From the sequence record KT919972.1: DNA of 64,000 bases; one strand, written 5' to 3'. This document shows, piece by piece, positions 34,182-63,034 of this stretch. Each line of letters begins with the position of its first letter. Positions within the stretch are counted from its first letter, which is position 1. The notes beneath the pieces are model-generated. The model was given only the letters and a program-made list of their open reading frames with translations. It did not search any database and was not told the DNA's origin. Both the position numbers and the translations under genes were made by a program.

Positions 34182-34189
34182 TATTTAGA
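34182..34189 (-). promoter_or_regulatory. Putative late promoter variant TCTAAATA
   Basis: Minus strand, 22 nt upstream of ATG 34159 and just past a terminator. Confidence 0.62.
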
Positions 34190-35212: not shown

Positions 35213-35701
35213 CTACTTTCTTCGCCATCTCTCAAGTTTTTCATCATATTCGCTATGCTTCCATAAGTCGAATACGATTGTACCTCTCTGAAACCACCAG
35301 ACCAATGAAATAGTATCATTTAACTTAGGGTCTTTTGGGTTTTTCCCTGAATAAAATTCACTACTAGGGTGTGAGTGATAAATCGACTTTTTAACTGCGA
35401 ACTTATACCCACCTTCAGGTTTACCGACTTCTTCTGGCGGGTATAAGTTACCTAGATACGCAACTTGATATACAGTGTTCTTGAATACGATTCGACTTGA
35501 ATCAATATTGAAGAGCAAGTTCTGGTATTGAGCAGCATTCGCAGCAATCTTCCACGGGTGCTTCGGTTTCGTTTCTAGTAACTCATCGATTTTCGGCTCA
35601 GGGATTAGTTTGGCTAGGTTATGATTACCCCACCCCTCTTCAAGTGATAAACTCAGTTCGATACCGTAAAGCGTGTTTTCATATTCATTAAATCGTAACA
35701 T
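35213..35701 (-). CDS. Hypothetical protein: putative propeptide plus possible HigB/RelE-like RNase fold
   Basis: 162 aa. N-terminal MLRFNEY...LSLEE| and C-terminal ISLVWWFQRGTIVFDLWKHSEYDEK. Confidence 0.7.
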   Translation of the reverse strand: MLRFNEYENTLYGIELSLSLEEGWGNHNLAKLIPEPKIDELLETKPKHPWKIAANAAQYQNLLFNIDSSRIVFKNTVYQVAYLGNLYPPEEVGKPEGGYKFAVKKSIYHSHPSSEFYSGKNPKDPKLNDTISLVWWFQRGTIVFDLWKHSEYDEKLERWRRK

Positions 35702-36226: not shown

Positions 36227-36436
36227 TTAGCATTCAATTGTTACCCACACATTTCGATTTAAATCGAAAAATGTAAGTTCATTATCTGCACCGTTTTCAT
36301 TTTTACGTTGTTCTTCTCGATTGCAATCAAGATGTGGTAGATAATGCTTGCATAAAGTCGCGTGATATTTCTTGCCTTTATGCTCAAACTTAAAGCAACC
36401 ATCTTTCATCTTGTAAAACATTTCGTCTCTTGTCAT
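36227..36436 (-). CDS. Small hypothetical protein (SH3/WYL-like pattern HATL...FFDL..N.W)
   Basis: 69 aa with GAGG SD, downstream of TCTAAATA. Confidence 0.65.
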   Translation of the reverse strand: MTRDEMFYKMKDGCFKFEHKGKKYHATLCKHYLPHLDCNREEQRKNENGADNELTFFDLNRNVWVTIEC

Positions 36437-36449
36437 GAATTTAGACCTC

Positions 36450-36457
36450 TATAAATA
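36450..36457 (+). promoter_or_regulatory. T4-type late promoter (uvsW)
   Basis: TATAAATA 43 nt upstream of ATG 36501. Confidence 0.82.
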
Positions 36458-36467
36458 CAGTTATACA

Positions 36468-36475
36468 TATTTAGA
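36468..36475 (-). promoter_or_regulatory. Putative late promoter variant TCTAAATA (36436-inh-35213 operon)
   Basis: Minus strand, 31 nt upstream of ATG 36436. Confidence 0.6.
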
Positions 36476-36500
36476 CAAAACTCGCATAGAGAGAAAAATC

Positions 36501-38033
36501 ATGACATGTGACATTAAAATTGAGTACCACGATGAGAGTTATGCGAGAGTCGTAGCCGAGCCAAGCATCACTCACGAAATGATTGACTATTTCTCATTTC
36601 TAACAGATGGGTACAAATTTAACCCGAAATTTAAAATGGGCATTTGGGATGGCAAAATTCGACTAATGACGTATCAAGGTCTATTACCATACGGTCTAGT
36701 CGGACAAGCTAAAGCGTTTGCATCAAATATGATGTATACGATTGAAACCGATCCAATGCTAGATCCGATTGAGAAAATTTCTCGTGAAGATTTCGAAGCA
36801 TGGGTTGAGTCTATTGACATCTACTCAGGGTCGAATAAGATTTCACCGTATTGGTATCAGATGGACTCTGTGTTTCACGGAATTAACAACCAACACAGTC
36901 TATTGAATCTACCAACATCTGCGGGTAAATCATTAATTCAGTCGCTGATTACTAAATGGTTCTTAGCACAAGAAGAGCACGAACTTCAGAAAGTATTAGT
37001 GATTGTACCTACAACTGCACTTGTCCAGCAAATGCGCGATGACTTCTTAGATTATCGTTTATTCGAACACAACGACATTTATCAGATTCGTGGTGGGGTT
37101 GATCGAGACGCAATCGGTGACTGCCGAATCGTTGTATCTACATGGCAATCTGCTGTAAAACAACCGAAAGAATGGTTTGACCAATTCGGTATGCTTTTAG
37201 TCGATGAGTGTCACTTAGCAACAGGTAAGTCATTAGACGGCATCATCAAGAAAATGACAAACTGTGAATACAAAATCGGTCTTACTGGCTCACTTCGAGA
37301 CGGTAAAGCGAATATTCTACAGTACGTTGGTTCATTCGGTGATATTTTCCGACCTGTTTCGACTGCACAGCTAATGGAAGAAGGGCAAGTAACAGATCTG
37401 AAGATAAACTGTTTAATGCTTGAATACCCACAGCCGTTACGTGATGAAATGAAGGGCAGTTCATATCAAGAAGAAATGAAATTCATTCTTGAGAACAAGC
37501 AGCGAAATCGTTACTTGATTAAGCTTGCGCATCACTTGAGCGCGAAGAAAGGCGAAAACACGCTATTGCTGTTCAAGAACATCAAACACGGTAAATTGCT
37601 TTACGAAGCATTGAAGAGCGTATATGACCCAGAGAAAGTGTTCTACGTATCTGGTGAAACTAAAACTGACGACCGTACGCATGTTAAGAAGATTGCAGAA
37701 GATATTGACGGGGCTATTATCGTAGCATCGTATGGTGTATTCTCGACTGGTATCAGTATCAAGAAACTACACAATGTAATTTTCGCACACCCAACGAAGA
37801 GTAAGATCATCAACTTGCAGTCGATTGGTCGTATTCTACGTAAACACGGTTCGAAAGTTACGGCGAAGCTGTTTGATATCATCGACAATTTGGCAATCAA
37901 GCCGAAACGTAAGAACGCTAAGAAGCCGTACACTCACGTAAATTACACAATGCGGCATGGTATGCAACGTATTGAGCTTTACAACCAAGAAGAGTTCAAA
38001 TACGCAGTCAAGAAAGTAGATCTTGCCGCATAG
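36501..38033 (+). CDS. uvsW: UvsW SF2 helicase
   Basis: LPTSAGKS, VDECH, IGLTGS and LQSIGRILRK motifs. Start set to ATG 36501. Confidence 0.97.
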   Translation: MTCDIKIEYHDESYARVVAEPSITHEMIDYFSFLTDGYKFNPKFKMGIWDGKIRLMTYQGLLPYGLVGQAKAFASNMMYTIETDPMLDPIEKISREDFEAWVESIDIYSGSNKISPYWYQMDSVFHGINNQHSLLNLPTSAGKSLIQSLITKWFLAQEEHELQKVLVIVPTTALVQQMRDDFLDYRLFEHNDIYQIRGGVDRDAIGDCRIVVSTWQSAVKQPKEWFDQFGMLLVDECHLATGKSLDGIIKKMTNCEYKIGLTGSLRDGKANILQYVGSFGDIFRPVSTAQLMEEGQVTDLKINCLMLEYPQPLRDEMKGSSYQEEMKFILENKQRNRYLIKLAHHLSAKKGENTLLLFKNIKHGKLLYEALKSVYDPEKVFYVSGETKTDDRTHVKKIAEDIDGAIIVASYGVFSTGISIKKLHNVIFAHPTKSKIINLQSIGRILRKHGSKVTAKLFDIIDNLAIKPKRKNAKKPYTHVNYTMRHGMQRIELYNQEEFKYAVKKVDLAA

Positions 38034-45937: not shown

Positions 45938-45945
45938 TATTTAGA
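45938..45945 (-). promoter_or_regulatory. Putative late promoter variant TCTAAATA (gene 34)
   Basis: Minus strand, 40 nt upstream of the gp34 ATG. No canonical TATAAATA in this intergenic region. Confidence 0.68.
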
Positions 45946-46990: not shown

Positions 46991-47272
46991 ATGGACATTC
47001 TTGAATACGAAACAATCTCTACTCCGCAAGATAAGCAAGAAGTAGTTAACATGGTTAAAGAAGCGTCTGCTTCCATGTTGCGCATTGATTCTGAACGCGA
47101 TCTAATGAAAGACATTGCGAATCGCGCAAAAGAAGAGTTCGAAATCAAACCTGCCGATTTCAACAAAGTTGTGAAGATGTATCACAAACAAAACCGCCAA
47201 GAAGAACAGGCGAAGTATGAAAAGGTAGACAATCTATACGAGAAGCTTTTTGACGATGCAGATGATGAATAA
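46991..47272 (+). CDS. dsbA: Double-stranded DNA binding protein DsbA
   Basis: VKEAS....RID.ER..MKDI..RAKEEF...FNKVVKMYHKQ. Synteny rnh-dsbA-33-59-32. Confidence 0.92.
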   Translation: MDILEYETISTPQDKQEVVNMVKEASASMLRIDSERDLMKDIANRAKEEFEIKPADFNKVVKMYHKQNRQEEQAKYEKVDNLYEKLFDDADDE

Positions 47273-47558
47273 AGACAACTACGTTTTAAAAGAAGAGCTT
47301 GGTGATTTAGTTCCGCCTATTAAAGGCAGTCTTAGACAGCAAATCTCTCTAGAAATTGAAGAGATTTATAATAGCTGTCCCGCCATGACCTATCTTGAAG
47401 CGTGTCTGTTCTTCATTGAGCAATACGATTACGACATTAGTCGCTTCCCGTATCTGATTAATCAGACGTTGAAAGACAAAATTGAGACTGAGGCGATAAA
47501 TGAAAAGACTATTAGAAGTCGATTTGGTTCTGCCTCGGACTTGGGTCAATGGGTATAG
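47262..47558 (+). CDS. gp33: Late transcription coactivator gp33
   Basis: TYLEAC..FIE...I...LKDKIETEAINEKTIR motif and synteny. Start uncertain (47250/47262/47265). Confidence 0.9.
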   Translation: MMNKDNYVLKEELGDLVPPIKGSLRQQISLEIEEIYNSCPAMTYLEACLFFIEQYDYDISRFPYLINQTLKDKIETEAINEKTIRSRFGSASDLGQWV

Positions 47559-53538: not shown

Positions 53539-55374
53539 ATGAAACACGACATTTTAGACATTGTTAGCGGTTCGGGTAACAACAAAGAGAATGCAAATAA
53601 AGATTCGAAAGTAATCCCTACAATGCGTGACTTAGTAGCTGGCACAGTGTCGAAACATTACGCACTTGAAGACTATCTACCGAAGCATATTGCAGATGCA
53701 CATATCGACGGCGATATTCATTTTCATGACCTTGACTACAGTCCATTATTCCCGCAATTCAACTGTATGCTTATTGATATCAAAGGCATGTTTGAAGGCG
53801 GCTTCAAAATGGGTAATGCTGAAATCGAAGAACCAAACAGTATTAGCACTGCTGCCACTGTTGTAACTCAGATTATTCAGCAAGTAAGTAGCCATATCTA
53901 CGGCGGTAACACGATCAATAGAATCGACGAAGTCCTAGCACCTTATGTTCGTAAGTCATATTATAAATGGCTCGAAGTAGGTCGCGAAGAACATCCCGAC
54001 TCTGATTCTAAAGCTGCTATCTTTGCACGAAAGCGTGTTGAAAAGGAAACGTTCGATGCATTCCAGACGTTTGAATATCAAGTCAATACGATGCAGACTT
54101 CAAACGGTCAGACACCATTCACGACAATCAACTTCGGGTTAGGTACGTCGTGGGAAGAAAAACTTATTCAAAAAAGTATTCTTCAGAATCGTATTGCAGG
54201 TCTAGGTAAGACTAAGAAAACTGCTATTTTCCCTAAGCTTGTTTTCACATTGAGAGACGGCGTGAACCTAAAAGAAGGCGACCCGTGCTACGGCATCAAA
54301 AAGTTAGCTCTTGAATGTGCAAGTAAGCGTATGTACCCAGACATTTTGAACTATGACAAACTAGTTGAAACGACTGGTGGGTTTAAGTCTCCAATGGGCT
54401 GTCGCTCATTCTTGGGTGACTGGAAGAACGAAGATGGTGAAACGGTATTCGATGGTCGTAATAACTTAGGCGTCGTCTCAATCAATATCCCGCGTATTGC
54501 TATTGAAGCATCGGGTGATACTGAACGCTTCTTCGAGATCTTACACGAGCGTTGTACACTAGCTTACGAAGCATTGATGTTGCGTATTAAGCGTTTTGAT
54601 GATGTAACTGCATCAGTTGCTCCGATTCTATACTGTGAAGGTGCAATGGGCGTGCGCTTGAAGCCAACTGATAAAGTCAGTGAAGTTTTCAAACACGGTC
54701 GTTCAAGTATCTCGCTTGGTTATATCGGGTTACACGAAGCAGTAACGTTGCTTTCGCCAGATAAAGACATGCATACGTTTGAGTCACAGCACAAACAATT
54801 CCTCGCTGAAAAGATTGTGGAAACTCTTAGAGCGTACACCGATGCATGGAAAGAACTGACGGGCTACGGTTTCAGTCTGTACAGTACACCAAGTGAATCG
54901 CTGTGTGATCGTTTCTGTCGTCTCGACCAAGAGAAATACGGTGTCATTACAGGTATCAATGACAAAGACTATTACACAAACTCGTTTCACTTAGACGTGT
55001 TCAAGAAAGTTAACCCATTTGAGAAAATTGATTTTGAAGCTGCATACCCAATTCATGCAAACGGTGGTTTCATCTGTTATGCTGAGTTCCCGAATATGCG
55101 AGATAACATCAAAGGTCTAGAGCGCGTATGGGATTATGCTTACACTAAAGTAGCTTACTTCGGTACGAATACCCCGATTGATCAGTGTACGTGTGGTTGG
55201 TCTGGTGAAGCTCATGGTGATTCGCTGGGTTATTCTTGTCCTGTTTGTGGTGAACGCGACCCCGAAAAGCTCAATGTAACGAGACGTGTCTGCGGTTATC
55301 TCGGTAACCCGGGTGCTCGTGGTTGGAATCACGGCAAGACTGTCGAAATGCAAAATCGAGTTAAACACTGTTAA
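53539..55374 (+). CDS. nrdD: Anaerobic ribonucleotide reductase (class III)
   Basis: KENANKD, HFHDLD, FNCML, SPMGCRSF, NLGVVSIN and RRVCGYL glycyl-radical motifs. Uninterrupted. Confidence 0.98.
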   Translation: MKHDILDIVSGSGNNKENANKDSKVIPTMRDLVAGTVSKHYALEDYLPKHIADAHIDGDIHFHDLDYSPLFPQFNCMLIDIKGMFEGGFKMGNAEIEEPNSISTAATVVTQIIQQVSSHIYGGNTINRIDEVLAPYVRKSYYKWLEVGREEHPDSDSKAAIFARKRVEKETFDAFQTFEYQVNTMQTSNGQTPFTTINFGLGTSWEEKLIQKSILQNRIAGLGKTKKTAIFPKLVFTLRDGVNLKEGDPCYGIKKLALECASKRMYPDILNYDKLVETTGGFKSPMGCRSFLGDWKNEDGETVFDGRNNLGVVSINIPRIAIEASGDTERFFEILHERCTLAYEALMLRIKRFDDVTASVAPILYCEGAMGVRLKPTDKVSEVFKHGRSSISLGYIGLHEAVTLLSPDKDMHTFESQHKQFLAEKIVETLRAYTDAWKELTGYGFSLYSTPSESLCDRFCRLDQEKYGVITGINDKDYYTNSFHLDVFKKVNPFEKIDFEAAYPIHANGGFICYAEFPNMRDNIKGLERVWDYAYTKVAYFGTNTPIDQCTCGWSGEAHGDSLGYSCPVCGERDPEKLNVTRRVCGYLGNPGARGWNHGKTVEMQNRVKHC

Positions 55375-55375
55375 G

Positions 55376-55399
55376 AAAGCGCCTTCGGGCGCTTTTTTT
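55376..55399 (+). terminator. Terminator after nrdD
   Basis: GCGCC-TTCG-GGCGC followed by T7. Confidence 0.92.
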
Positions 55400-55420: not shown

Positions 55421-55449
55421 TTGCAACACGAATCATAAGTGCGTAATAT
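55421..55449 (+). promoter_or_regulatory. Sigma70-type early promoter
   Basis: TTGCAA-17 bp-TAATAT with an upstream A-tract. Confidence 0.8.
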
Positions 55450-56967: not shown

Positions 56968-57491
56968 TGAGTTGTGTTTGGATTACAAGTGATCTGCATT
57001 TAGGTCACAAAAATATTGGTAAGTTTCGGGATGACATTGAAGACACTCAAGCGAATACCGACTGGATTGTTGACTTCTGGTTGAAGAACGTTCGCAAGCG
57101 TGACACTGTGATTATGCTTGGTGATACTGCATTTACTGAAGAAGCTGTTGGAATTCTTGCTGGTTTGCCGGGTCGTAAAGTACAATATGGCGGGAATCAT
57201 GACGATCTTCCTGTTTCAAGCTACATGCGTGCGTTTGACGTGATTCGCGGTTGTGAAAAGTACAAAAAGTTGGGTTGGTTGAGTCATTTTCCATTACACC
57301 CCGATGAACTGCGTGGTCATTTCAGCATTCACGGGCACGTGCATTACGCAACGATTGATGACTATCGTTACGTGAACGTTTGTTGTGATAACTTGCAGCG
57401 TAACATCGGTCAGCCGATGATTCGTTTAACTGATCTGCGACAACTTCTTGACAAACGTCGTGAGTCCAAAGAGGTAAGTTACGACTTCTAA
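56967..57491 (+). CDS. Calcineurin-like metallophosphoesterase
   Basis: SDLHLGH, LGD, GNHD, SHFP and IHGHVH motifs. Confidence 0.9.
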   Translation: MSCVWITSDLHLGHKNIGKFRDDIEDTQANTDWIVDFWLKNVRKRDTVIMLGDTAFTEEAVGILAGLPGRKVQYGGNHDDLPVSSYMRAFDVIRGCEKYKKLGWLSHFPLHPDELRGHFSIHGHVHYATIDDYRYVNVCCDNLQRNIGQPMIRLTDLRQLLDKRRESKEVSYDF

Positions 57492-57504
57492 GTGGTAGTC
57501 TATC

Positions 57505-57553
57505 TGCATGAACATCTAAATACTGGTATGGTATTAAAGATGGTGTTCATGCA
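57505..57553 (+). promoter_or_regulatory. TCTAAATA promoter (57515-57522) inside a 10-bp hairpin overlapping the RBS of ORF 57556
   Basis: TGCATGAACA (57505-57514) is the exact reverse complement of TGTTCATGCA (57544-57553). ATG at 57556. Confidence 0.72.
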
Positions 57554-57555
57554 CT

Positions 57556-58401
57556 ATGATAGATGTTTTGTTAAGATATGACGCGAGAATTATCAATAGC
57601 CGAAAGATCGTTATCTACACAGATGAAAATCGACTTGGTCTAATTGTTAAACTTGCGAAAGAGCTTGACGGGACGTACAAGAAGTGCGACCCAGGCAGTT
57701 CAATTGGTTGTATACAGATGGAAAAATGCAGAGTATACGTCAAACCAACATCTAATCCGGGCATCGAGAATGAACGCAATTTCTATAATATTGTAAAGCA
57801 ACACATTGATTCTGGCTGTACTCGGATTAAAATTGGTCGACGAGTAATAAAAGGTGTTCAGTCGATTGAAATGACTGGTCACGACACAAAAAACAACAAA
57901 AAAGCCGATATGGTATTGAAGACCGTAAGCGGCGATTTTCCGATTTCGATTAAAAAATCAAATGCCGAGCGTTGGGCTAGTACTGACGTTATTCACGGCA
58001 CTGAAGCTCGTAAGCTTTTATCACAAATGATAGTCAAGAAAATGGTTACATTATCGGACTATTCTGACGATGGTAAAGTGAAGAGACTTAGCCAGCCAAT
58101 CGCACGCAGACTACGAGACGACGAAATAAATCATGTTGTATTTGGTTCAGACATTCTCAATAACGGTCTTGTTGTAGTCAATAGCTTTACACTAGATGAT
58201 TTTGTATTCAAACGCGGTACCTTGCATATTAACGGTGATGTTTTGTTGAACGCGAAAGATATTAAAGATACTGTATATCACCCGTATATGTTGATTAGAA
58301 ATGATGCATGTCGCCGTTCTAAGGCATTGCCTTATGGTGTACGTGTTGAAGTTGTATTCGAATCAAGAATTACTAAAAATACGATTGTTTACGAGGAGTA
58401 G
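57556..58401 (+). CDS. Hypothetical protein, putative PD-(D/E)XK-like nuclease fold
   Basis: 281 aa. GIENE..F helix, then KADMVL...PISIKK. Confidence 0.6.
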   Translation: MIDVLLRYDARIINSRKIVIYTDENRLGLIVKLAKELDGTYKKCDPGSSIGCIQMEKCRVYVKPTSNPGIENERNFYNIVKQHIDSGCTRIKIGRRVIKGVQSIEMTGHDTKNNKKADMVLKTVSGDFPISIKKSNAERWASTDVIHGTEARKLLSQMIVKKMVTLSDYSDDGKVKRLSQPIARRLRDDEINHVVFGSDILNNGLVVVNSFTLDDFVFKRGTLHINGDVLLNAKDIKDTVYHPYMLIRNDACRRSKALPYGVRVEVVFESRITKNTIVYEE

Positions 58402-58404
58402 CTA

Positions 58405-59229
58405 ATGGCTATCAAAGATAAATTGGAAGAACTTATTGCGTCGGTTCACCAATGTACTACCAAAGACGGTGTAGTTGAAATCGAGAAACTATATACGCAA
58501 AAGAAAAAAGAACTCGGGGCGAACATCACACCGATGATGGACATTCGTGTTCGAGACGCAATTCGCGGCAAAATCACCATGTTTGACAAAGAATCTGCTG
58601 CTGAAAAAGAAGAAGCGGCTATGAAGAAACAACAACAAGAAGCTGAAGCAATTGCAGCTAAACTTGATGAGGGTCTATTTGTCGTTTCGGAAAAAGATTT
58701 CTTCGAACATGAAACCGTTGTGAATGAGTGTGCGATTGACGCTGCGTGTATCATGGACGTGGATTCAAGCATTCCTTCAGTTGGTCATAAAGAATTGACT
58801 AAAACATTATCTGAAGCGTGTGAACACGTTGGTGCTGTTGGTAAAGTGTTTGTACCTGAAGCTCAGAACAAGGTTTTATCACTTCAAGAGCGCGTTGAAT
58901 TATTTGAATCGTTCTCTGATGTCGATGTTGCACCGAAAGGCGTGATGTTTGCTGAAGTAGAGACTATGATTCAAAAAGGTATCACTCGCGTGTTTGCATT
59001 TGTAGAAGCGAACAAAGTAGCTGAGTATCGCCGTCTAGGTCGTCACTTCCTACGTGTAGGTGGAACACGATTCGAGATCGTTGAAGTCAAGAACAAAGTA
59101 CCATCTAGTACTATTGAAAATCTGATTCGCGAAGATAATCTGCACGAATTCATGCGCAGCGTACCATTACCACTTGATGAAGCAGAGAAGATCTTTGATC
59201 GTCAACTTGAGCAAATCTTGGGGGCATAA
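58405..59229 (+). CDS. Hypothetical protein with degenerate HIGH-class nucleotidyltransferase-like C-domain
   Basis: 274 aa. Coiled-coil N-half, then PSVGHKEL, LSLQERVELF and KVPSS.I..LIREDNL.EF...VP patterns. Confidence 0.55.
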   Translation: MAIKDKLEELIASVHQCTTKDGVVEIEKLYTQKKKELGANITPMMDIRVRDAIRGKITMFDKESAAEKEEAAMKKQQQEAEAIAAKLDEGLFVVSEKDFFEHETVVNECAIDAACIMDVDSSIPSVGHKELTKTLSEACEHVGAVGKVFVPEAQNKVLSLQERVELFESFSDVDVAPKGVMFAEVETMIQKGITRVFAFVEANKVAEYRRLGRHFLRVGGTRFEIVEVKNKVPSSTIENLIREDNLHEFMRSVPLPLDEAEKIFDRQLEQILGA

Positions 59230-59708
59230 TGAGTGTAGCTAAACGTGGTGCAGATGGTTTTTATGCTCTTCGTCTGTCTCGTTTGCTTCATCTTCGTTTT
59301 GAACGTTGGGAAGCATATCGAATGGGTATCATCGACGCAGATGGTAAGAAGTTGCGTGACCCTGTAACTGCACAAGAGAAAAGTAACTGGACGATGTTTC
59401 ATGTTACTGTGAGAAATATCAAGCGCATGGTTGGTGCATTACCAGGTGGTAAAACAGCACTTGATTATGGCGCGTCTTATTTGTTGCTGATTGAGCTTGC
59501 AAAAGAATACGGGTTATCTGAAGATTTCGCGAAAGAGTGTATTCGAGTCGAAGAAGCTGTTGTTGCAGGTGATGCGGGTGACGGTAGTAGCTCACCAGAG
59601 TCGATTGCTTCTGGTGAAACGACTGGTGCTGTAACTAATGCAGGTCCTGAAACTATCGGTAAGAAAAAGAAAAAGAAAAAGCTGAAGAAGTTCAGACATT
59701 TCGAATAA
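59229..59708 (+). CDS. 61.1: gp61.1-like protein with gp23 N-arm-like C-terminal segment
   Basis: YALRLSRLL...F..WEAY.MGIIDADG and EK..WT.FH..VRNIKR motifs. Directly upstream of primase, as in T4. Confidence 0.8.
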   Translation: MSVAKRGADGFYALRLSRLLHLRFERWEAYRMGIIDADGKKLRDPVTAQEKSNWTMFHVTVRNIKRMVGALPGGKTALDYGASYLLLIELAKEYGLSEDFAKECIRVEEAVVAGDAGDGSSSPESIASGETTGAVTNAGPETIGKKKKKKKLKKFRHFE

Positions 59709-59714
59709 TAAAAC

Positions 59715-59736
59715 GCCTCGGAAACGGGGCTTTTTT
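59715..59736 (+). terminator. Terminator after 61.1
   Basis: GCCTCG-GAAA-CGGGGC followed by T6. Confidence 0.85.
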
Positions 59737-59738
59737 AT

Positions 59739-59767
59739 GTTTATCGTATCGTGATGCCGTGTATAAT
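59739..59767 (+). promoter_or_regulatory. Promoter upstream of primase (GTTTAT-17-TATAAT)
   Basis: Consensus -10 and a T4-early-like -35. Inverted repeat CCGTGTA/TACACGG spans the -10. Confidence 0.65.
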
Positions 59768-59787
59768 CACTACACGGAGGTTGAATT

Positions 59788-62440: not shown

Positions 62441-62469
62441 TTGCGTTGTCGATGTGACTTGTGTAATAT
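62441..62469 (+). promoter_or_regulatory. Sigma70-type early promoter
   Basis: TTGCGT-17 bp-TAATAT with an upstream A-tract. Confidence 0.78.
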
Positions 62470-62501
62470 ACTCACATCGACAACGAAAAGAGAACAATAT
62501 T

Positions 62502-62639: not shown

Positions 62640-63034
62640 ATTTGCATTCGTTCATGTACAAATGGAAAAGATTTTCATTTGAATTCAACAATTACGCGAT
62701 TGAGAAGCAGCGTGGCTTAGTCGGGACTGTTGACTTTGTGATGAAGAAACACTTCACACATCGAGTATATGACCGATTCTGTGCTGCTGAACATTCAACA
62801 TTGCGTAGAATGCTGTATCATACAGTAAACAAGCACTTAGGTGAAGTTCTGTATTGGTATTACAGTGCTGAAAAGCGTGAGCTTGCTATCAAGCGTGAAG
62901 ATATTTACATAATATTTGAGAAGGGAATTAAAGGTTGTATTTTGATTACGACGATATATCGTAATCAAAATAAGCAAAACCATGATAAATTCTTTTTGAT
63001 TGATATAAGCAGAAAGCAAAATGAAGCAAATTAG
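62636..63034 (+). CDS. Hypothetical protein
   Basis: 132 aa, ATGA-coupled to the upstream gene. Confidence 0.7.
   Translation: MNLHSFMYKWKRFSFEFNNYAIEKQRGLVGTVDFVMKKHFTHRVYDRFCAAEHSTLRRMLYHTVNKHLGEVLYWYYSAEKRELAIKREDIYIIFEKGIKGCILITTIYRNQNKQNHDKFFLIDISRKQNEAN

Follow-up and report, generated by a model that had tools for sequence, protein, structure and literature searches.

The leader of a conserved hypothetical gene

The subject of this analysis is the leader of an open reading frame (ORF) at 57556–58401 in a window of 64,000 nucleotides (nt) from sequence record KT919972.1; the window denotes this whole stretch of DNA, and coordinates refer to it. Between 56400 and 59300 it matches Vibrio phage phi-Grn1 (KT919972) at 100% identity and phage KVP40 at ~87% in a DNA comparison, both phages being T4-related Straboviridae. 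ORF 57556 is the orthologue of KVP40.0017, there annotated as a hypothetical protein, and lies in the replication-gene region in the order nrdD, two small ORFs, nrdG, a phosphoesterase gene, ORF 57556, the genes for a UvsW.1-domain protein and a gp61.1-like protein, primase gp61 and dUTPase. Every KVP40-like record that was found (49 by DNA, 70 by protein) contains a homologue, at one locus and with the same genes behind it; among viral contigs, a search for related loci gave KVP40 alone. We computed the sequence elements, thermodynamics, conservation, covariation, promoter use and protein fold of this locus. The results make it likely that the leader is a translational timing switch of the T4 type, which would silence an endonuclease-like product early and release it late.

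The initial annotation of this DNA, made from its letters alone, had described a 10-bp inverted repeat, a late-promoter octamer, a GGTG Shine-Dalgarno (SD) sequence and an ATG, and on direct inspection of the sequence all of their coordinates were exact. The left repeat TGCATGAACA (57505–57514) has its exact reverse complement, TGTTCATGCA, at 57544–57553; GGTG occupies 57542–57545, and the ATG at 57556 stands two bases past the right arm. The elements of the leader and the gene behind it are as follows.

57498–57504, + strand: outer left arm GUCUAUC, which pairs with 57558–57564 in the fold (7 pairs, 100% of cells paired, 9 distinct sequences)
57505–57516, + strand: main left arm, 12 nt, which shares its last two bases with the beginning of the late promoter; present only on transcripts begun upstream
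57515–57522, + strand: gp55-type late promoter variant TCTAAATA, with C at −12 as in phage Aeh1, directly 3' of the 10-nt left repeat
57519–57535, + strand: inner hairpin AAUACU/GGUAUU, which in the fold shortens the loop of the big stem
57526–57530 (~57528), + strand: predicted late transcription start, ~6 nt past the octamer by the T4 rule
57542–57553, + strand: main right arm, which carries the SD GGUG at 57542–57545 (sequence and fold)
57558–57564, + strand: outer right arm GAUAGAU, which in the fold covers the G of the AUG and codons 2–3
57556–58401, + strand: ORF of 281 residues, orthologue of KVP40.0017, phrog_12709 (gene calling, homology and predicted structure)

Minimum-energy folding lengthened the repeat to a 12-bp stem that pairs 57505–57516 with 57542–57553 and holds the whole GGUG SD. 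The complete structure at 57498–57564 (67 nt) had a free energy (dG) of −25.3 kcal/mol with a z-score of −3.86; none of 200 shuffles folded as well, and the main stem persisted when folded in 125- and 146-nt contexts. A single 10-bp repeat is not rare in itself, the window holding 19 inverted-repeat pairs of at least 10 nt within 45 nt with ~3 perfect 10-bp pairs expected by chance on our own estimate, and it is on position, conservation and covariation that the argument depends. Long inverted repeats, with arms of 14–17 nt, also occur at 62441–62488, 62938–62972 and 35400–35449; none of these three is obviously a terminator.

The cost of opening the ribosome-binding site

Accessibility of the ribosome-binding site (RBS) was expressed as the opening cost dG_open, the energy needed to make positions −13 to +5 single-stranded, on a long RNA carrying 90 nt of upstream sequence and on a late RNA that starts 6 nt past the octamer. 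Over eight phages dG_open was 11.8–15.1 kcal/mol on the long RNA compared with 6.6–8.1 kcal/mol on the late-start RNA, and the long form was dearer by 4–7.5 kcal/mol in all eight. Within the KVP40 genome, where the median over 386 genes is 5.2 kcal/mol, the long form (11.8 kcal/mol) ranks 17th of 386 and the short form stands at about the 78th percentile. Since the predicted late start falls within the inner hairpin at 57519–57535, the late RNA would be unable to form that hairpin. These models predict a release of the RBS on late RNA that is real but partial. Folding and opening costs alike bear out the earlier proposal that the hairpin sequesters the SD on long transcripts, and they extend it to part of the AUG.

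A major late-promoter form with C at −12

In T4 the late promoter TATAAATA occupies −13 to −6 (PMC1524935; PMC2988020), and the late consensus of Aeromonas phage Aeh1 is CTAAATA, with C at −12 (PMC1524935). The window contains 10 copies of TCTAAATA, the octamer in the ORF 57556 leader, where 2.8 are expected; 1 of 100 shuffles reaches this count, and the canonical TATAAATA occurs 6 times. Seven of the ten copies stand 16–41 nt before ORF starts, and the genes behind the copies include those for the tail tube gp19, the proximal long-tail-fibre subunit gp34 and the prohead protease inhibitor inh. The copies, together with the window's gene for a late-transcription protein, are listed below.

17315, 22417, 24350, 25404, 26533, 30349 and 57515, + strand: copies of TCTAAATA
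34182–34189, 36468–36475 and 45938–45945, − strand: copies of TCTAAATA
47262–47555, + strand: gp33 homologue (94% identity to KVP40 gp33), late-transcription co-activator and a trans-acting need of the switch

Across KVP40, 7 of 12 copies of TCTAAATA lie 15–35 nt before genes, gp19 and gp48 among them; the corresponding counts before genes are 11 of 13 for TATAAATA and 0 of 7 for TGTAAATA. That the same octamer precedes gp19, gp34, inh and gp48 agrees with the assignment of 57515–57522 to the late-promoter type in the initial annotation. Because it is enriched in the window and is placed before late genes in both the window and KVP40, TCTAAATA is, as judged from sequence, a main late-promoter form of the KVP40-like clade. 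Among these phages the consensus appears to read T(A/C)TAAATA, part of the way to the form found in Aeh1. The KVP40 annotation includes gp55, gp33 and gp45; phi-Grn1 sister phages have a gp55 of 95% identity, and the window encodes gp33. A sigma-70 promoter within the hairpin loop was considered and rejected, as the promoter scan found none near 57500–57556.

Two other leaders with late-promoter octamers were observed. In front of uvsW, TATAAATA on the + strand (36450–36457) and TCTAAATA on the − strand (36468–36475) form a pair of back-to-back divergent candidate late promoters (36431–36507), and a weak stem (z −1.75) between 36431–36439 and 36500–36507 can hide the uvsW AUG on longer RNA; this leader is not counted among the evidence for the switch. 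Outside the window, the Rz-like spanin gene KVP40.0086 (KVP40 53835–53895) has GATAAATA 31 nt upstream. Its RBS on long RNA is among the most occluded in the genome (dG_open 16.6 kcal/mol), with an unpaired probability of 0.11 that climbs to 0.48 when the RNA begins at the predicted late start; on its sequence, this leader appears to be a switch of the T4 gene e kind that would time lysis.

Conservation and rebuilding of the leader

The 67-nt element was 82–100% identical among relatives compared with 50–86% for the flanking coding DNA, and it was the more conserved in every comparison: 100% against 86% and 85% for the two flanks in KVP40, 93% against 75% and 72% in L021, and 82% against 68% and 50% in L018. 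Free variation was seen in the bases right after the upstream stop codon and in the loop segment before the right arm. Among the ten alignable sequences 99.1% of cells were paired. Compensatory double changes converted a C–G pair to U–A in 1.081.O and a G–C pair to A–U in L023, and one-sided changes to G–U were also present.

Diverged orthologues were taken from metagenomes and GenBank, and a covariance model was built on the close clade. This model found the leader of L019, whose protein is 56% identical at the amino acid level; all 12 of its main-stem pairs are standard, TCTAAATA and the inner hairpin are kept, and by our reading of the alignment five main-stem pairs are altered on both sides. 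The leaders of L020, D479 and EniLVp02 were not recovered by the close-clade model, and the stems of the first two are built differently. In L020 (protein 49% identical), CCTAAATA lies within a left arm of different sequence, which in a single fold pairs with the SD region; in D479 (45% identical), GATAAATA precedes a 10-bp stem that covers the SD and AUG (z −2.6, again in a single fold). EniLVp02 (34% identical) has no strong stem but a terminator and, after it, a perfect TATAAATA placed 28 nt ahead of the AUG. The sole sequence-invariant element across these vibriophage lineages is TAAATA, 28–34 nt before the start codon. The stronger evidence for the switch is that the RBS appears to be occluded by lineage-specific sequence, the architecture being kept with differing arms. 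Homologues in Stenotrophomonas phage Ps15 and Xanthomonas phage X1 overlap their upstream genes and have no comparable leader, and the predicted switch is therefore specific to vibriophage lineages.

In EniLVp02, the annotated 48-residue ORF EniLVp02_0204 (L016:2285–2431) spans the terminator hairpin and the perfect TATAAATA, and for this reason it is probably not a gene.

Transcription context

The window carries the following further features around ORF 57556.

55373–55398, + strand: strong intrinsic terminator 3' of nrdD, with an 11-bp stem and a T run; 5' boundary of the putative early unit that would run into ORF 57556 (terminator scan)
58405–59229, + strand: gene for the UvsW.1-domain protein, tightly packed 3' of ORF 57556 and always the next gene in relatives
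59229–59708, + strand: gp61.1-like gene, third of the conserved trio
59715–59730, + strand: intrinsic terminator with a T run, which closes the three-gene trio (terminator scan)

According to the initial annotation, no terminator separates the nrdG operon from ORF 57556. This holds for strong terminators, none of which was found between 55398 and 57556, but not for weak ones: the terminator scan placed a single weak terminator-like hairpin between the two listed terminators, at 57404–57419, inside the phosphoesterase gene. A weak sigma-70-like promoter, TTGCAA-17-TAATAT, was read by eye at 55421–55449, 3' of the nrdD terminator. From this arrangement, transcription reading through from upstream into ORF 57556 is plausible. 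A search of sequencing runs for this phage turned up one DNA-type run and no RNA run.

Primase gene 61, which follows the trio terminator, has its own extended −10 element, TGTATAAT, at 59760–59767. This element sits within a 7-bp hairpin (59758–59777) whose right arm abuts a GGAGG SD.

An endonuclease-like protein fold

The AlphaFold model of the ORF 57556 protein is confident, with a predicted local distance difference test score (pLDDT) of 91 and a predicted template modelling score (pTM) of 0.77. It comprises a small N-terminal alpha/beta domain (residues 1–66) and a PD-(D/E)xK restriction/nicking-endonuclease-like domain (residues 67–270). Foldseek comparison with the BFVD viral models matched R.CviJI (E 9.7e-9, TM 0.56) and Nt.CviQII (E 1.2e-6), with further matches to a chlorovirus 'endonuclease' and to uncharacterised proteins of T4-like cyanophages. 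When residues 67–270 were aligned with VIA-align, the best whole-domain matches were HhaI (Z 6.6), MspI (Z 6.3) and HinP1I (Z 5.5), with 146–166 residues aligned; HinP1I was also the top Foldseek match in the PDB (E 0.05). A language-model search lists a cluster carrying Pfam R-HINP1I, which we treat as a lead only.

Residues N72, E73, K116, D118, S131, K133, N136, W140, S142, D144 and F196-G-S-D199 are invariant in 31 aligned homologues. In the model, E73 lies on the first long helix (68–85), D118 starts the strand 119–123, and S131-x-K133 ends the strand 126–133. The group to which HinP1I (SDX18QXK) and MspI (D..NxK) belong tolerates Q, N or S for the second acidic residue of the motif. In the model, the arrangement of E73...D118...S131-x-K133 resembles a PD-(D/E)xK site with its second acidic residue substituted, as occurs in HinP1I/MspI. 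On this predicted structure, a PD-(D/E)xK DNA endonuclease or nickase, kin in fold to R.CviJI, Nt.CviQII and HinP1I/MspI/HhaI, is the most likely identity of the protein. The 'putative nuclease' of the initial annotation gains a predicted fold and a candidate motif that are restriction/nicking-endonuclease-like.

PHROG 12709 has no function assigned. No methyltransferase is annotated beside the ORF, its neighbours being the phosphoesterase, the UvsW.1-domain protein and the gp61.1-like protein. A free-standing homing endonuclease was rejected: the gene is in all KVP40-like records at one locus, and no HNH, GIY-YIG or LAGLIDADG domain was found in the protein. The N-terminal domain (57556–57753, residues 1–66) gave many matches at Z 5–6 to the catalytic-lobe region of nucleotidyltransferases (TUTases, CD-NTases, MenT), a resemblance that is probably generic as far as the model goes, and the domain is absent or different in longer homologues.

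It is a doubtful but possible extension that the protein represents an unrecognised, widely conserved family of late-expressed restriction/nicking-endonuclease-like enzymes in T4-like phages, with members in vibriophages, in Stenotrophomonas and Xanthomonas phages and in cyanophages and with the fold of chlorovirus R.CviJI and Nt.CviQII, that act on DNA late without a cognate methylase. If so, the enzyme might cut host or competitor DNA, the phage being spared by the extreme site avoidance that KVP40 shows or by 7-deazaguanine modification; alternatively, it might nick phage DNA to give clamp-loading sites or packaging substrates. The hairpin would then exist because early activity would damage replicating phage DNA.

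Separately, the KVP40 genome shows an extreme avoidance of palindromic restriction sites: GGCC is observed 32 times against 220 expected, AGCGCT once against 47, and ACGCGT, CAGCTG, CGATCG, CTCGAG and CTGCAG are each absent against 30–54 expected. Restriction by the host could account for this avoidance, as could a sparing of the genome from the restriction-enzyme-like protein that the phage itself encodes.

A proposed timing switch and its alternatives

In the switch that we propose, early transcripts would begin after the nrdD terminator and read through nrdG and the phosphoesterase gene into ORF 57556. On this early RNA the 12-bp stem, the outer 7-bp stem and the inner hairpin would hide the SD and part of the AUG, and translation would be poor. 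Once replication and gp55, gp33 and gp45 turn on late transcription, RNA would start from TCTAAATA inside the hairpin, at ~57528. Lacking the whole 5' arm, it would have an RBS far easier to open, and the protein would be made. This late transcript probably extends through the UvsW.1-domain and gp61.1-like genes as far as the 59715–59730 terminator. The start site and the timing of translation in this scheme, like the enzymatic activity of the product, are what we infer from the computed features; read in this way, the sequence suggests that the protein is probably made only late.

Several results weigh against this proposal. Upstream, the candidate early promoter of the unit is an 8/12 match read by eye, and the weak hairpin at 57404–57419 might lower read-through into ORF 57556. 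Covariation within the close clade is thin, its two compensatory pairs being matched by 8 of 500 shuffles. As to the product, comparison with solved structures gave matches whose Z scores, all below 8, count as middling on the calibration of the tool, and phmmer and profile searches with all 31 members gave no Pfam (including PF11463 R-HINP1I), NCBIfam or PDB sequence match at E values up to 10; matches to L18 and ModA in the sequence searches were dismissed as noise. Finally, the late leader is still predicted to fold a 7-bp local hairpin over the SD and AUG, the mean unpaired probability of the RBS moves only from 0.25 on the long RNA to 0.29 on the late RNA, and the late dG_open of ~7.5 kcal/mol exceeds the genome median of 5.2 kcal/mol.

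The three properties of the late leader just named would also suit a hairpin that is a constant damper of translation rather than a timing device, with early and late RNA both partly closed and the protein level low. Set against this are the extra 4–7.5 kcal/mol needed to open the long form in eight of eight phages, the conservation and covariation of a 5' arm that is active only on long RNA, and the late-promoter octamer at a fixed distance in every lineage. A constant damper is, on balance, unlikely.

The structure could instead act on the fate of the RNA, as a leaky terminator or attenuator of the nrdG unit or as an RNase III-type processing site, with the late promoter re-starting transcription. 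Its stacked stems amount to 19 bp in all with an inner hairpin in addition, and GUUUUGUU follows the outer stem, whose end is at 57564. However, the terminator scan did not flag it, the loop being too large and the stem base AU-rich; the U-rich tail falls in codons 4–6, and L019 and L020 lack it although their stems still cover the RBS; and the feature conserved is a right arm that overlaps the SD and AUG. On the scan result and the missing tail we rejected an intrinsic terminator, and we regard an effect on RNA fate in general as decidedly unlikely.

That the arms bracket the promoter symmetrically, and that the product is predicted to bind DNA, would fit a third explanation, in which the repeat serves at the DNA level, as an operator on either side of the late promoter that is bound by a dimeric protein, possibly the ORF product itself, as with I-TevI, whose autorepression at its own late promoter is documented (PMC2988022). 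Against this, the conserved G–U pairs and the one-sided changes to G–U keep pairing only in the + strand RNA, and the covariance model scores ~100 bits on the + strand against ~20 bits on the − strand. These G–U pairs and the asymmetry of the scores point to an RNA structure and not to a DNA operator. Moreover, L019, L020 and D479 have entirely different arms that nonetheless pair and cover the SD and AUG, and an operator is accordingly very improbable.

A functionless chance inverted repeat beside a chance AT-rich octamer, a thought prompted by the abundance of such repeats in the 64 kb, is the least probable reading and was rejected as very unlikely, given the z-score of −3.9, an element better conserved than neighbouring coding DNA, compensatory changes and independent arm replacement in diverged orthologues, and the enrichment of the octamer before late genes.

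Significance

The early-silencing, late-release hairpin of T4 would by these results be extended to the KVP40-like vibriophages, with comparative evidence that is unusually clean, the same architecture being rebuilt with different stems in diverged orthologues. We found no paper describing such a switch in KVP40-like phages, in a search that left the KVP40 genome paper outside its scope. Recognition of TCTAAATA, with its C at −12, as a major late-promoter form should improve late-gene annotation in these phages, and the conserved hypothetical protein KVP40.0017/phrog_12709 gains a likely activity and a likely time of expression. Relatives of KVP40.0017 are found in many T4-like phages under development for aquaculture phage therapy. 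The leader also offers a simple, testable model for the evolution of RNA-based timing switches.

Comparison with known systems

The best fold matches to residues 67–270 of the ORF 57556 protein are R.CviJI, Nt.CviQII and the type IIP enzymes HinP1I, MspI and HhaI. The protein has no detectable sequence similarity to these enzymes, no adjacent annotated methyltransferase, and an extra N-terminal domain.

Switches of the kind proposed here are known from T4 e, soc, 49, I-TevI, I-TevII, I-TevIII and segB and from Aeh1 mobE, in which the RBS is sequestered on early or middle RNA and a late promoter removes the 5' arm (PMC3014915; PMC2988022). The precedent invoked by the initial annotation, hairpins of e, soc, 49 and I-TevI with an internal late promoter, is documented in these same papers. 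The initial annotation had gone on to argue that ORF 57556 is harmful if made early, as would fit a nuclease. This is not a necessary inference, because deletion of the T4 I-TevI hairpin caused no endonuclease-mediated loss of viability (PMC2988022).

Aeh1 mobE (Gibb and Edgell 2007, 2009, cited in PMC2988022) belongs to a schizo-T-even phage with late promoters of the form CTAAATA (PMC1524935). It is a sporadic HNH homing endonuclease, whereas ORF 57556 is PD-(D/E)xK-like, and all KVP40-like phages carry it at one fixed position with the gene order downstream conserved.

The present leader differs from the T4 cases in its gene and protein family, in the C at −12 of the octamer, in an extra inner hairpin made partly from the promoter's AAATA, and in a predicted release that is only partial. 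It resembles T4 49, e, soc and I-TevI in having the SD and/or AUG in a stem whose 5' arm is found only on long RNA, and in a gp55-type promoter positioned so that late RNA would lack that arm; a further likeness, plausible from the transcription context, would be the placing of a late gene within an early or middle polycistronic unit. As with T4 gene 49 (endonuclease VII) and I-TevI, the regulated product is DNA endonuclease-like. Gene 49, too, presumably lies downstream of an nrdD/nrdG region. The placing of the ORF 57556 leader with the T4 e, 49 and I-TevI and Aeh1 mobE type of switch is, on the comparative sequence evidence, well supported.

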